From contig RHPI01001037.1 of the NCBI GenBank assembly GCA_009103225.1, forward strand, positions 1 to 64,000: a stretch of DNA of 64,000 bases, in the 5' to 3' direction. The notes under the pieces were generated by a model. That model searched no databases. It worked only from the letters and a program-made list of their open reading frames with translations, and was not told the origin of the DNA. The position numbers and the translations under genes are program-made. The stretch is from Chlorokybus atmophyticus (taxonomy: Eukaryota > Plantae > Mesostigma and Chlorokybus algae). Within the stretch, counting starts at the first letter, position 1, and every line of letters starts with the position of its first letter. Of this stretch, positions 3,471-8,467 are shown piece after piece.

Positions 3471-4261
3471 GGCCTTATAGTAACGAAAGTTACTATTAGA
3501 TCCCTGTATCAAGATTACAGGCGGCCTGAGCCACGACAGTCTAAATTAGCGTCCTCAGGTGCACGGCCGTTGCCAATATTTAGTCGGCCGGCAGGGAAAA
3601 CATATTGCGACGTATTAGTCGGTGGCTAGTAACAACTACATTGTTCATTGGCATAATTAGTAATTACATTAAATCTGGTATAGTAATATGTTTTGCCTGC
3701 TAGGAGCGTTTACAAAAACTACATTGTAAACTACTTCAACCATGGTGGCCCACTTGCCCATTTCTTCTCCCTTTACGTGTAGCTCATCACCTTAAGCTTT
3801 TTACCATATTTGTGACGGGAGCAATAATAGTAGGGGTATTATTGCTACCTAAATAACACATTATGTATGAATAAGTATCTAAATATGCTTATTTATACCT
3901 CTTTTCTACGGTTCCTCGCTTATTAAAGGCTATAATGCTTTATCATAGCTTATTCAATGGGTGTGGAACCGCTTATTCAAGCCTATTTAGTGTCACATTT
4001 GATAAATTGTAATCACTATCTCGTTAGGTACCTTACGATAGGTATCTTTCAATAGGTACCTCATCGATAGGTACCTTATCTGAGCTGTAATTGGGTCACG
4101 CTAGATTTCCTAACTACCCTATCTGTAGGGTCGATGTCTAATTGTGGGTTAATTATCGAGAGGTATATATTTGGTATACTCTTGATATTAAAGGTCACAT
4201 CAAACTGATGTGACCTCACTTTCAGTTCTCGACTCGCTGGCGGCCACGCCGCTGAAAGGCT

Positions 4262-4710
4262 TGTCATAGGCGGTGTTGGTGTTGGGGTAGAGGATTGAAG
4301 GGGCATCACCGGCGACGGTGGTGCTGTTACATTGGTCATCGGAGCTTGAGACCCGGGTTCGATTCCTGCCTTGCACACGGATTCCGCGGTCGTTGTTTCT
4401 CAATCCAGTAACATCGTAAATGGTCATAAGTGCCATCATCGATGGGTCGCGACTTGCCTAATGGCAGTCGCGCCGGCGTTCAATCGGCGCGGCAAGACGC
4501 GACCTGCCTGTCGCGATGCGACCTGTGGGGTCGGCAGCGGCGCGATGTGCGCGCGTTGACCGGTATGGGCCTAAATTAGCCGGTCCTTGGGCGGTGGGGC
4601 CGGTGATTGACCCTAATCAGACCCCCGGGATGATTCCCCAGCTGATGCGAGCCAGCTGCCAAGGACGTCAGCGTTCTTAAGTGGGGGGGAATGTAATGGG
4701 AAGGTACATT
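4262..4710 (+). mobile_element. Chimeric TRIM: different 5' LTR-like segment (4262-4331), family-A PBS/internal/PPT, 19-bp stub of family-A LTR
   Basis: TGTCA...GTTACA, then TTGGTCATCGGAGC (4332-4345), internal region homologous to 4794-5146, PPT GGGGGGGAA (4683-4691), then TGTAATGGGAAGGTACATT. Confidence 0.65.
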
Positions 4711-4714
4711 AGAC

Positions 4715-5225
4715 TGTCACAGCCCACTCGACCACAAAAGACTTGGTGCTTTTATAATCAATTTGTGGTAATTCAATGTACCTTCCCGTTGCATTCCCCC
4801 CCACTTAAGAACGCTGACGTCCTCAGCAGGTGGCTCGCATCAGCTGGGGAATCATCCCAGGGGTCTAATTAGGGTCGGTCACCGGCCCCACCGCCCAAGG
4901 ACCGGCTAATTTAGGCCCATACCGGTCAACGCGCGCACATCGCGCCGCTGCCGGCCCCACAGGTCGTGCCCTGCCGCACCGACTAAACTGGTTAGTTCGG
5001 CGCGATTGCCATTAGACAAGTCGCGACCCATCAATGATGGCATTTATAAAGTGACCATTTACGATGTTATTGGATCGAGAAACAACAATCGCGGAATTCG
5101 TGTGCAAGGCAGGAATCGAACCCGGGTCTCAAGCTCCGATGACCAATGTCACAGCCCACTCGACCACAAAAGACTTGGTACTTTTATGGTCGATTTGTGG
5201 TAATTTAATGTACTTTCCCGTTACA
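4715..5225 (-). mobile_element. TRIM family A, full-length copy (two 79-bp LTRs, PBS, 353-bp non-coding internal region, PPT)
   Basis: LTRs 5147-5225 and 4715-4793 are direct repeats with TG...CA ends; PBS-like TTGGTCATCGGAGC after the 5' LTR; purine tract GGGGGGGAA before the 3' LTR. No matching TSD seen. Confidence 0.8.
5112..5166 (-). promoter_or_regulatory. tRNA-type (Pol III type 2) A and B boxes spanning the LTR/PBS junction of TRIM-A
   Basis: A box TGGTCGAGTGG (5166-5156), B box GGTTCGATTCC (5122-5112), 33 nt apart. Confidence 0.7.
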
Positions 5226-6493
5226 TTGGTGTTGGGGTAGAGGATTGAAGGGGCATCACCGGCGACGGTGGTGCTGTTACATTGGTATTCAGGAGCTGGG
5301 GGGTGACGTGGGTACTTATAGGGGGCGGCGACCTGCTCTCGGCCAATTAGATAGCGGCGGCAGCGGCCTCCTATTTGTCCACGCAGCCCAAGCTTCAAGT
5401 TAGCTTCCCTGCGCTACTTAAACGTTGAAGCCACCCATCAAAGAGGCGGCCTCTCCACATGTGAGGTACCATCACACACATTGGTGACTTGCCTGCTTGC
5501 CAGGTTTGCGTGTGTATTTTCATGCACATCATTCAGTGACTTGCCAGTGCATGAGTGCGGCTTGCTAGTGTGCCATCACTGCTTGTCACTTAGTGCACTA
5601 TCATTGCTTGCAGTGGCTGCCTGTCATTGCATGCGGTGATTGCTTGTCATTGTGCTTGCCACTGCATGTCACAATTGGTCACTGTACGGCTTGCCTGTTG
5701 CATGCCTGTGGCTTGCCTGTTGCATGCATGTGACGTACCTGTGACCTGCCAATTGCTTTTTTGAGTCTTGACCCGGGTCCGCAAGTTCGAACCAAGCTGT
5801 TCTCAAACCCTCCCCCTCTGGCTTCGGCCTGAAGATCGGGACTTGGTTAGCCTAGTTTTGGGGAAGTTCTAAGGCATTTGGTTCTCAAACTCGGTTAGTT
5901 TAAAACCCTGCCCCTCTGGCTTCGGCCTGGAGATTGGGACCTGGTTGAGGACAACATAGGGTTAGGACATTTTAGTCCCATTCAGATTTATTCTGTTTGA
6001 TGACTCTCCAGATTCAACGTTTCTTGATTTGGGACTGGTTTGGACTCTGGTTGGGGCTTTTACAACCTGGGGTTAGTTTAATCCTCTTGTTGAACCTGGT
6101 CCACAGGAGAGGTTCTCACCATTCCATTTTGCCTCTTTTGCAGACAAATGGAAGAGAACTCGGTGCTCAAAGGGGGAAAGCTCGTAAAAAGAGCAACTAT
6201 CCCGTGAGGAGGAGTTTCCATCTATGGAGGATATTTCCAACTCGGATGATGCACCTGATGAGTCTCATGCTGCTAAGGATGTGGATGCCGTGGTGGAACC
6301 AGACGGGCCGCCACCACCACCATCATTCGTCAAGCCTGAAATCTCAATTCGCCTGACGAAACATGAGCTGATTGACCACTTTCTTGGCACCTATAATGAG
6401 GAGCCTCGTGAGGCGATTGTCTCGCTCGTCAACTTCGTCTTGCATGTGGCAGAAAACGATCTCAAAGCTCACCACCTGTATGGGGTGAGATTG
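5226..6493 (+). mobile_element. Remnant of a larger LTR-type element: LTR 3' end (5226-5281), PBS-like TTGGTATTCAGGAGC, repeat-rich internal region
   Basis: 5226-5281 repeats 4276-4331 and ends GTTACA; followed by a near tRNA-iMet PBS; internal direct repeat 5805-5848/5903-5946. Confidence 0.45.
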
Positions 6494-6897
6494 CTGGGGA
6501 AGCTTCCCAGGGGTCTGATTTAGGGTCGGTCACCGGCCCCACCACTCAAGGACCGGCCAATTTAGGCCCATACCGGTCAACGCGCGCATAGCGCGCCGCT
6601 GCCGGCCCCACAGGTCGCGTCGCCGCGATAGGCAGGTCGCGCCCTGCCGCGCCGACTGAACTGGTCAGATCGGCGCGACTGCCATTAGGCAAGTCGCGAC
6701 CCATCGATGATGGCACTTATAAAGTGATCATTTACGATGTTATTGGATCGAGTAACAACGACCGCGGAATTCGTGTGCAAGGCAGGAATCGAACCCGGGT
6801 CTCAAGCTCCGATGACCAACGTCACAGCCCACTCGACCACAAAAGACTTGGTGCTTTATGGTCGATTTGTGGTTATATAATGTACCTTCCCGTTACA
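6494..6897 (-). mobile_element. TRIM family A, 3'-truncated copy
   Basis: 5' LTR 6820-6897, PBS, B box 6785-6795, internal homology to the 4794-5146 copy down to about 6494; no PPT or 3' LTR. Confidence 0.75.
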
Positions 6898-6999
6898 GCC
6901 TGGCACTGCTCAGTGCCGCCGCCTGCTGCCGTCACTCGCTGCCGCTGCTCCTGCCAACGCCAGAGCCATCGCCGCCCCCACAGCTTTTCACGCCCTCCC

Positions 7000-7185
7000 T
7001 CTGATACAAAATGTAAGAGAAAGGGTGTGCTACCGCCCCCTTTAATCCCCTACCCCAACACCGCCACCAGCCACGCCGCCGCTGCCACAGCGTAGATCCT
7101 CTGCCTATGGCTGCTGCGTTTGCAGCGCCGTCATGCGGTTAATATCGACATGAGACTCATGTCGCATATCAATATCAGTGTTACA
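7000..7185 (-). mobile_element. Putative LTR (7012-7185) followed by PBS-like TTTTGTATCAGAG
   Basis: TGTAAC...CTTACA ends on the minus strand; shares GGCGGTGTTGGGGTAG.GGATT.AAGGGG with the 4262-4331 segment; contains hairpin CGACATGAG-A-CTCATGTCG. Confidence 0.4.
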
Positions 7186-7532
7186 GGTAAGCAACACTAC
7201 ATTAGGGCCTTAACACTAAGTTAATGGCCTTAATCTAGCTGGGGGTGGGTGGGTATTGGCTGTATATACCCGTTAGGACCCTTATTAATTCTAAATAAAG
7301 GCGGGGAAACTCTATGGAGGTAGCACACCGTTACACATAAGCTTTGAATTTGAGGGGAACAGTTTACGCACATGTATCGCCACTATCACGCTTGAGGCTA
7401 TATGCGTGCAAGTGCGTGCAGTACTAGGTGGGATGTGAAAGTGTATATTATACTAACAGTGCAGCAGCAGCAGCATTAGAGGACAACTTGCAGGAGAAGA
7501 GGAGTACCACCAACATACATTCATACGCACAT

Positions 7533-8067
7533 TGTAACAATTGGGGCATGACCACTAGGCTGTGGTAGTAAAAGACACTGCCATAAGTGAAGTCTGTCAC
7601 AATTTATCCCAATTCGTGACATTCCTCCCCATTTTAACCCATGAGTTCCTCATAATCCAATGAGGCACTAGCTCACGTCGCCGTGTTCGCGACCGTACCA
7701 CGATCGGTCTGCCCGCGGCCTGTTGGATCCGGCCCACGAACGGTCCTGGCCGACCGAATGGCCATCTTCACCGCGCGACCTGCTATCGCAGCGCGACCGC
7801 TCACGCGGCCTTAGGTTGAACTGGCTTGGCGCGCACGTCGTGATCCCGCGCCCAGCCTAGGGCAAGCCGCCCCAAACGTTGTTGTTCTTTTGCCTTGGAT
7901 CTGCCTCAGTTGCCTACGGGAATTGAACCTGAGACGTCAAGCTTCGTTACCAATGTAACAATTGGGGCCTGACCACTAGGCTATGGTAGTGTCTTTTACT
8001 ACCAAAAGACTTACTACCAAAGACACTACCATAAGTGAAGTGTCACGAAATGGGATAAATTGTGACA
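7533..8067 (-). mobile_element. TRIM family B, intact with 5-bp TSD CACAT
   Basis: LTRs 7954-8067 and 7533-7621 with TG...CA ends; PBS-like TTGGTAACGAAGC; PPT ATGGGGAGGAA next to the 3' LTR; CACAT at 7528-7532 and 8068-8072. Confidence 0.9.
7919..7983 (-). promoter_or_regulatory. tRNA-type A and B boxes spanning the LTR/PBS junction of TRIM-B
   Basis: A box TAGCCTAGTGG (7983-7973) inside a D-arm-like stem GCCT-AGTGGTC-AGGC; B box GGTTCAATTCC (7929-7919); 43 nt apart. Confidence 0.7.
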
Positions 8068-8467
8068 CACATGTGCACAATGCGGATTGGTGACAGTGAT
8101 GTTGATGTAGCGGGTGTTGTACTGGTATGACAACAATGACTGCGAGAGATATAATAGTCATGTTGCAGTGTTCATTAGATGTAACTTTGTATGTGCGTCC
8201 TGCGGATATTAGTGGATATGTGTCCTTCCAAATCACCATTACACGGGTTGTGCAATTCAGCCACGATGCATGTTGTGCAGCTCAACACATGCAATTGACC
8301 TTGCGGCGGCATGGCTGCGAGCGGTTGGCGTAATAACACGTATCATAATGAACGATAACATATTAATACTTATCATAAACATTGCATACTCTGCATTGCA
8401 CACTTTACACACATGCGCATGCATACTATGTGCACGTTCATATAGTACCTGACATTGAATGCCCCCC

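Follow-up and report, generated by a model that had tools for sequence, protein, structure and literature searches.

Can an LTR retroelement place the end of its LTR, and its PBS, inside an internal Pol III promoter? The question is raised by a short repeat in the 64-kb stretch of streptophyte algal DNA that we analysed (the window, meaning the whole stretch). In this repeat a box A lies inside the LTR and a box B lies on the far side of the PBS, and a first reading of the locus, made from the sequence only, proposed that a complete promoter exists only where the 5' LTR is joined to the internal domain. The features that bear on this proposal are collected in Table 1, where the repeat and its other copies are called family A and a second group of elements is called family B.

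Table 1. Coordinates of the two TRIM families and of the features discussed in the text
Feature	Position	Strand	Remarks
Family A TRIM	4715..5225	-	511 bp; sole copy in the 64-kb window with both LTRs
5' LTR, 79 bp, TGTAAC...GTGACA	5147..5225	-	direct repeat of 4715-4793
3' LTR	4715..4793	-	box A at 4724-4734, box B absent behind it; repeat comparison and motif coordinates
PBS-like TGGTCATCGGAGC	5133..5145	-	adjoins the LTR end after one T; initiator-Met type, one extra C
Polypurine tract AAGTGGGGGGGAA	4794..4806	-	abuts the 3' LTR on its upstream side
Box A TGGTCGAGTGG	5156..5166	-	inside the LTR, start 20 nt before the LTR end (5147)
Box B GGTTCGATTCC	5112..5122	-	internal domain, context GAGACCCGGGTTCGATTCC, 11 nt behind the PBS
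Degenerate tRNA-Gly(GCC)-like unit	5103..5181	-	spans LTR end, PBS and leader; local alignment
TTTT	5168..5171	-	1 nt before box A, in the 8-nt insertion; 3' LTR counterpart 4736-4739
Junction hairpin GTGAC-A/TTG-GTCAT, 5 bp (slash, LTR end)	5139..5152	-	at the anticodon-arm position; the LTR ends inside the loop
13-bp hairpin TCGACCATAAAAG / CTTTTGTGGTCGA	5160..5193	-	3' arm includes the TTTT and the first 7 nt of box A
Family A copy 3	6493..6897	-	5' LTR, PBS, box B, internal domain; cut before the polypurine tract
Copy 3 boxes	box A 6829-6839, box B 6785-6795	-	motif search
Family A copy 1	4318..4714	+	begins exactly at the PBS; box B 4356-4366; 3' LTR cut after 21 nt
Family B TRIM	7533..8067	-	split box layout as in family A; LTRs 114 and 89 bp
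Family B box A TAGCCTAGTGG	7983..7973	-	inside the LTR
Family B PBS-like TGGTAACGAAGC	7952..7941	-	motif coordinates
Family B box B GGTTCAATTCC	7929..7919	-	behind the PBS, 54 nt start to start
Family B polypurine tract AAAATGGGGAGGAA	7635..7622	-	motif coordinates
Family B TSD ATGTG, perfect 5 bp	8072..8068 and 7532..7528	-	flank comparison

Anatomy of the element and its tRNA-like unit

Sequence and repeat comparison identify the minus strand at 5225..4715 as a non-coding TRIM of 511 bp. It is bounded by short TG..CA direct repeats, measures less than 1 kb in total and is without coding capacity. In addition, a PBS is adjacent to the 5' LTR and a polypurine tract is adjacent to the 3' LTR. 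The two 79-bp LTRs are 91% identical. The longest ORF encodes 65 aa and spans the LTR/PBS junction, and a search of a protein collection returned zero homologues for it. The LTRs, the PBS, the polypurine tract (PPT) and the shortness of the ORFs bear out the earlier identification of 4715-5225 as a TRIM. Because both ends of this copy abut rearranged repeats, its flanks (ACCAA and GTCTA, which differ) cannot be read for a target-site duplication (TSD). The PBS is read as the initiator-Met type because it nearly matches the PBS of the Selaginella element Helenus-1_SMo (TGGTATCGGAGC); its complementarity was judged against that Selaginella PBS.

At the sequence level, a type-2 Pol III promoter consists of a box A (TRGYNNARNNGG-like) and a box B (GGTTCRANNCC) in the same orientation and 30-60 nt apart, and this is what the LTR/PBS junction of family A contains. 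Our coordinates agree with the first reading on box A near the LTR end, on box B past the PBS and on the gap of 33 nt that separates them. The tRNA-type spacing that it had claimed is canonical, at 44 nt from start to start. Could this layout have arisen by chance? Across the 64 kb, with both strands counted, the expression GGTTCRANNCC has only four matches. Each of them (4/4) lies within these TRIMs, and three have a box A 44 or 54 nt upstream. Simple arithmetic for the same expression in 128 kb gives about 0.24 chance matches, and shuffles give an expectation of 0 for the 20- and 23-nt motifs. The split arrangement of the boxes is not due to chance.

The boxes belong to a longer unit that resembles tRNA-Gly. 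We used as reference the plant tRNA-Gly(GCC) sequence printed in PMC6037947. In local alignments, tRNA positions 7-71 are covered by the full copy (5225..4715; score 46) and positions 1-71 by copy 3 (score 47), as compared with 17.8 +/- 3.4 for shuffles, none of which (0/1000) reached the observed score. Over the variable loop and T arm the identity is complete (18/18 nt, AGACCCGGGTTCGATTCC), which exceeds what the box-B consensus requires by 7 nt. The box A/D region is matched by GTGGTCGAGTGG at 11/12 positions, the 5' acceptor by GCACCA in copy 3, and the unit terminates in TGCA. In the full copy the acceptor reads GTACCA; every Logan contig at 5180 has the G>A counterpart that restores GCACCA. 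This end-to-end alignment substantiates the tRNA derivation that had been proposed for the boxes.

The unit departs from tRNA-Gly at two places. Between the acceptor and box A there is an 8-nt insertion, AGTCTTTT, which carries a TTTT, and this is the sole run of at least four T on the sense strand of the LTR (5168..5171). Further along, the 24 nt of tRNA that lie between box A and the T-arm match, including the anticodon arm, correspond to 26 nt of LTR terminus and PBS, so that the tRNA spacing of the boxes is kept. The tRNA fold itself is not recovered: ARAGORN found 0 tRNA genes in the window, the best tRNA-clan score in Rfam was 14.9 bits against a gathering score of 47, with nothing at threshold, and the 76-nt tRNA-like unit folds no better than shuffles (z = +0.6). 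The unit is tRNA-derived, judged by alignment, and is not a tRNA gene, judged by ARAGORN and Rfam. Rfam scans with E up to 10 gave no 5S rRNA match. The 136-nt stretch with the 13-bp hairpin folds at z = -2.4. As a separate matter, the unit's own 3' end was considered as a primer and rejected, as it is without complementarity to the PBS.

A sister family, other copies and local rearrangement

The split layout recurs in family B, where the start-to-start distance between the boxes is 54 nt, as compared with 44 nt in family A. The perfect 5-bp TSD of this element fixes its LTR end between the boxes, and the split layout is therefore no artefact of a misdrawn boundary. The same boundary upholds the earlier placement of box B outside the LTR.

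The claim that family B is unrelated to family A did not survive. The two families have in common a 43-nt module that covers the LTR end, the PBS and box B (TGT(G/T)ACA-TTGGT..AGCTTGA..GGTTC(G/A)ATTCC), with a local alignment score of 37 against 14 +/- 2 for shuffles. The internal domains of the two families, when aligned, score no higher than shuffles. For the comparison of the LTRs a MAFFT alignment was unreliable, and local alignment with shuffles was used instead. Aligned with tRNA-Gly, family B scores 32, above every shuffle. All differences between the boxes of the two families (TGGTCGAGTGG vs TAGCCTAGTGG for box A, GGTTCGATTCC vs GGTTCAATTCC for box B) fall at degenerate positions of the consensus, and the junction hairpin has one compensatory change (GTGAC/GTCAT in family A, GTTAC/GTAAC in family B).

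The first 27 nt of the two family B LTRs (7533-7621 and 7954-8067) are mutually inverted and bounded by TGTCAC/GTGACA. In the 5' LTR about 26 nt are also inserted, and they give rise to a perfect palindrome of 12 bp, GGTAGTGTCTTT...AAAGACACTACC. Because its two LTRs disagree around the TTTT, that copy yields no R, and family B speaks neither for nor against the hairpin and TTTT details described below for family A.

Two further copies of family A lie near the full one. In copy 3 (6897..6493) the box layout matches, as had been reported from the sequence alone, with one change, at the last base of the LTR. The PBS with which copy 1 begins sits behind a foreign LTR end without a box A. The boxes are invariant across the three copies; other 30-nt stretches are equally invariant, so the three-copy comparison cannot tell whether the boxes are preferentially conserved. 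The Logan contigs have 237 variant sites, and none of the 40 that were listed lies between 5088 and 5179. Scans of genome contigs and viral contigs returned 0 further copies, and a PBS-anchored pattern matched 120 loci in metagenomes, all of them chance matches without similarity to family A or B.

The surroundings of these copies are rearranged. A 61-nt stretch, which consists of an unrelated LTR end (...GGTGGTGCTGTTACA) followed by TTGGT, occurs twice with 100% identity, at 4276-4336 and 5226-5286. This pair flanks an 889-bp block in which copy 1 stands head to head with the full copy (5225..4715), and the TTGGT shared at the start of the PBS looks like the point where template switching or recombination produced the block. 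Further along there is a minus-strand LTR of about 325 bp (TGTAACGGTGTGCTACC...TCTCTTACA) at 7011-7335, followed by an initiator-Met-like PBS, TTTTGTATCAGAGGG. From 7335 onward, contigs of other copies carry the complement of a PPT. Copy 3 is located about 115 bp downstream of this LTR, and is probably a nested insertion.

Short Logan contigs from two DNA-like data sets are 85-99% alike over nearly all of 4200-7340; they mark the region as repeated DNA and carry no sign of transcription. A search for RNA runs that contain the stretch returned none. The part at 5287-6492, which separates the TRIM copies and includes a 99-aa ORF at 6224-6523, has many contigs of 85-99% similarity in two public data sets. 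By this contig evidence it is repeated DNA rather than a single-copy gene, and it may belong to the interior of a larger non-autonomous element. Within it a 44-nt unit occurs twice, at 5805-5848 and 5903-5946.

Neighbouring LTR elements and both TRIM families (5283-5297 and 7941-7952) have the same TGT(G/T)ACA termini, TTGGT and variants of an initiator-Met-like PBS. These common features suggest one group of autonomous partners. A reverse transcriptase or integrase element with such ends was not found in the window.

How a split promoter could work, and the rival readings

We hold with moderate confidence that the tRNA-Gly-derived unit acts as a type-2 Pol III promoter, and that family A represents a split-promoter variant of the TRIMp3/Helenus kind. 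In this arrangement the 5' acceptor and box A occupy the final 35 nt of the LTR. The LTR terminus and the initiator-Met-like PBS stand in for the anticodon arm, at the same length, and the internal domain holds the T arm, including box B, as well as the 3' acceptor. The complete promoter would then be formed only where a 5' LTR meets the leader. Why might an element adopt such a design? At only 79-114 bp, the LTRs of families A and B offer little room for a Pol II promoter together with a poly(A) signal. An LTR too small to hold a U3 promoter, R and U5 poses a problem that an internal promoter, composed of U5, PBS and leader, would solve.

Type-2 promoters place the Pol III start 10-20 nt upstream of box A. 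If TFIIIC were bound to both boxes of family A, the same distance of about 10-20 nt would put the start at or just past GCACCA. Pol III would transcribe a body of roughly 440 nt and would stop at the TTTT of the 3' LTR. From box B to the 3' LTR no TTTT occurs in sense orientation, although this is not significant as a Pol III signature, given that 37%-70% of shuffles are also without TTTT. With the TTTT placed between the predicted start and box A, about 10-15 nt would be repeated at the two RNA ends as a terminal redundancy (R).

The same geometry counts against a Pol III reading. In the 5' LTR, too, a TTTT lies downstream of the predicted start, and read-through would be required there. The 13-bp hairpin offers a possible way around this. 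Its 5' arm, which pairs with the TTTT, would be upstream of the predicted start, so the arm would be present in the RNA only at the 3' LTR. This difference might allow Pol III to read past the 5' TTTT and yet stop at the 3' TTTT. It has been proposed that Pol III is aided in stopping at short T-runs by RNA structure upstream of them. Reverse transcription and integration would be provided in trans by an autonomous LTR element. A scan for bacterial-type promoters and terminators found nothing, and is irrelevant here.

More tentatively, though as a serious candidate, we propose that family A is a self-limiting Pol III retrotransposon. Its LTR boundary and PBS would lie inside the tRNA-Gly unit and its 3' and solo LTRs would be silent, and the inserted terminator together with the U3-only arm of the hairpin would set a minimal R. 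It would then represent a third Pol III solution, arranged independently, beside Cassandra and Helenus, and the first in a streptophyte alga.

Are the boxes simply inert? They could be a relic of the element's origin, kept only through the youth of the family; a Helenus-like ancestor in which the PBS shifted into the tRNA-like part is one conceivable source. The RNA could then be made by Pol II from the LTR or come from read-through of host genes. The tRNA-like fold is lost according to ARAGORN, Rfam and folding, the boxes are conserved no better than other internal stretches in the three copies, and the LTR contains a TATA-like motif (TATAAAAG/CATAAAAG); a TTTT just past the predicted start is also awkward for Pol III. 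Nevertheless, we consider an inert relic unlikely. Two families with unrelated internal domains keep the boxes, the consensus positions and the tRNA-like spacing, where the rest has diverged beyond recognition. A Pol II origin of the RNA also has difficulties of its own. A 79-bp LTR has almost no space for a U3 promoter, R and U5, and the TATA-like motif is the complement of the hairpin's TTTT arm, 22-29 nt before box A. A start directed by this motif would land in box A and would leave an R-U5 of about 10-15 nt.

An improbable reading is that the unit works at the level of RNA, where structure around the PBS (tRNA mimicry or a U5-PBS stem) would serve primer annealing, packaging by the Gag of the partner element, or processing. 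Precedents can be found among other retroelements: HIV-1 is known to have tRNA-like elements beside its PBS, and Ty1 to have additional boxes complementary to tRNA. The junction hairpin, present in both families with its compensatory change, fits such a role, as does the fact that both PBSs deviate from the initiator-Met type exactly at the positions that pair in the hairpin. The whole unit is, however, no more stable than shuffles, its acceptor and T stems are broken, and the positions that are conserved are those of the DNA box consensus and not the pairing partners. A promoter role is also compatible with a function at the RNA level.

The sequence-only reading had named a SINE simply inserted into an LTR as the finding that would speak against it. 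The unit is clearly tRNA-derived, and a published model derives Helenus, Ajax and Cassandra from SINEs that inserted into LTRs (Kojima 2024, PMC10886601). That a tRNA-derived SINE or a tRNA pseudogene accounts for family A as it now stands is nonetheless very improbable. The LTR boundary crosses the middle of the unit and the PBS lies inside it, only the 5' half of the unit is found in the 3' LTR, the unit has neither a SINE tail nor a TSD on its flanks, and the TSD of family B puts the LTR end between the boxes. Such an insertion is contradicted for the present structure, and could still be its remote origin.

It is scarcely credible that the box likeness is accidental or that primer tRNA was copied beyond the PBS in plus-strand synthesis: the palindromic B-box core TTCGAA would let an antisense T arm mimic a box B, but primer read-through would give an antisense T loop 17-23 nt after the TGG where the observed box is in sense at 24-34, the full-length alignment with tRNA-Gly is also in sense orientation, and all matches lie 11-12 nt behind a TRIM PBS despite the small number expected by chance. 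Orientation and distance thus speak against a derivation of box B from the T arm of the primer tRNA, copied in antisense, and this reading was rejected.

Significance and relation to known elements

We return to the split Pol III promoter as our preferred reading. If it works, an LTR retroelement can put its LTR boundary and PBS inside an internal Pol III promoter, and would avoid the cost of an active promoter in each 3' and solo LTR. The recently proposed TRIMp3 class would also become wider, both through a different architecture and through a new kind of host, an early-diverging streptophyte alga. There is a practical point for annotation as well, as tRNA-like units of TRIMs can inflate or confuse the annotation of tRNAs and SINEs. 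Both families look abundant in the genome, and may provide good markers and a tractable system for studying how Pol III transcripts enter LTR-retrotransposon replication. New in this work are the identity of the unit as tRNA-Gly, the finding that the LTR end and PBS stand where its anticodon arm would be, the inserted terminator with its parallel in Cassandra, the module common to families A and B, and the TSD of family B.

How do these elements compare with known systems? Like a tRNA-derived SINE (SINE2), family A has a tRNA head with boxes A and B, is a few hundred bp long and is non-coding and non-autonomous. SINEs, however, are without LTRs, PBS and PPT, depend on LINE machinery and end in a LINE-like or A-rich tail, whereas family A has LTRs, a PBS and a PPT and no tail, and family B has a TSD of 5 bp. 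Canonical TRIMs (the type of Witte et al. 2001, 'TRIMp2') are closer in size, in the order LTR-PBS-PPT-LTR, in their TG..CA ends and in an initiator-Met-like PBS. They differ in having no promoter unit derived from a small RNA, and their LTRs are usually 100-250 bp.

TRIMs with a small-RNA Pol III promoter have been grouped as TRIMp3, which comprises Helenus, Ajax and Cassandra (PMC10886601). Cassandra has a 5S rRNA-derived Pol III promoter in its LTR (Kalendar et al. 2008, as cited in PMC10886601 and PMC12486564). According to the same two accounts, its 5S domain contains a terminator that is absent from real 5S genes, and its RNA ends have an R of 18 bp. As Cassandra is described there, both are TRIMs in which an internal Pol III promoter, putative in family A, derives from the gene of a small RNA. 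They also have in common an inserted terminator that the cellular gene is missing, and an RNA whose terminal redundancy is very short, at 18 bp for Cassandra and a predicted length of about 10-15 nt for family A. The same descriptions set the two apart in promoter type (type 1 in Cassandra, with the 5S box A, IE and box C; type 2 boxes in family A) and in position, as the promoter of Cassandra is wholly within the LTR and the boxes of family A straddle the LTR end. Transcription of Cassandra has been shown experimentally, in those accounts, whereas the promoter of family A is read from its sequence. The 5S rRNA-derived LTR domain that characterises Cassandra and Ajax is absent from family A.

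The closest relatives in design are found in Helenus, a group of TRIMs with tRNA-derived sequence in their LTRs (Kojima 2024, Biology 13:119, PMC10886601). The first reading had presented the element as an undescribed tRNA counterpart of Cassandra. In part this had been anticipated, as tRNA-type TRIMs are published as Helenus/TRIMp3 in that paper; the split layout stands as new, and a unit that crosses the LTR/PBS boundary is described neither in Kojima 2024 (PMC10886601) nor in a 2026 sugar-beet survey that cites it. Hosts of Helenus are fungi, animals and one plant, Selaginella (PMC10886601).

Family A and Helenus are both short non-coding LTR elements with a PBS and a PPT that are, or in family A would be, mobilised in trans. 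In both, a degenerate tRNA-like unit retains boxes A and B without being a functional tRNA. The TSD of Helenus is 5 bp in plants and fungi, as it is in family B, and the PBS of Selaginella Helenus-1_SMo differs from TGGTCATCGGAGC of family A by the one extra C found here. The differences concern the architecture. In Helenus the whole unit and a T-run lie inside the LTR, so that both LTRs and solo LTRs have the full promoter. The LTR of family A, in contrast, ends at the anticodon-arm position of the unit, the PBS is part of the unit, box B is internal, the 3' LTR has no box B behind it and the TTTT is upstream of box A. The LTR is also shorter, at 79 bp as compared with at least 120 bp in the Helenus examples compared, and the host is a streptophyte alga, where Selaginella is the only plant in PMC10886601. 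Family A thus has the tRNA-derived boxes of a Helenus TRIM and departs from Helenus in the feature of tRNA-derived sequence held in the LTRs, which makes its split layout a variant that stands beside Helenus and Cassandra.
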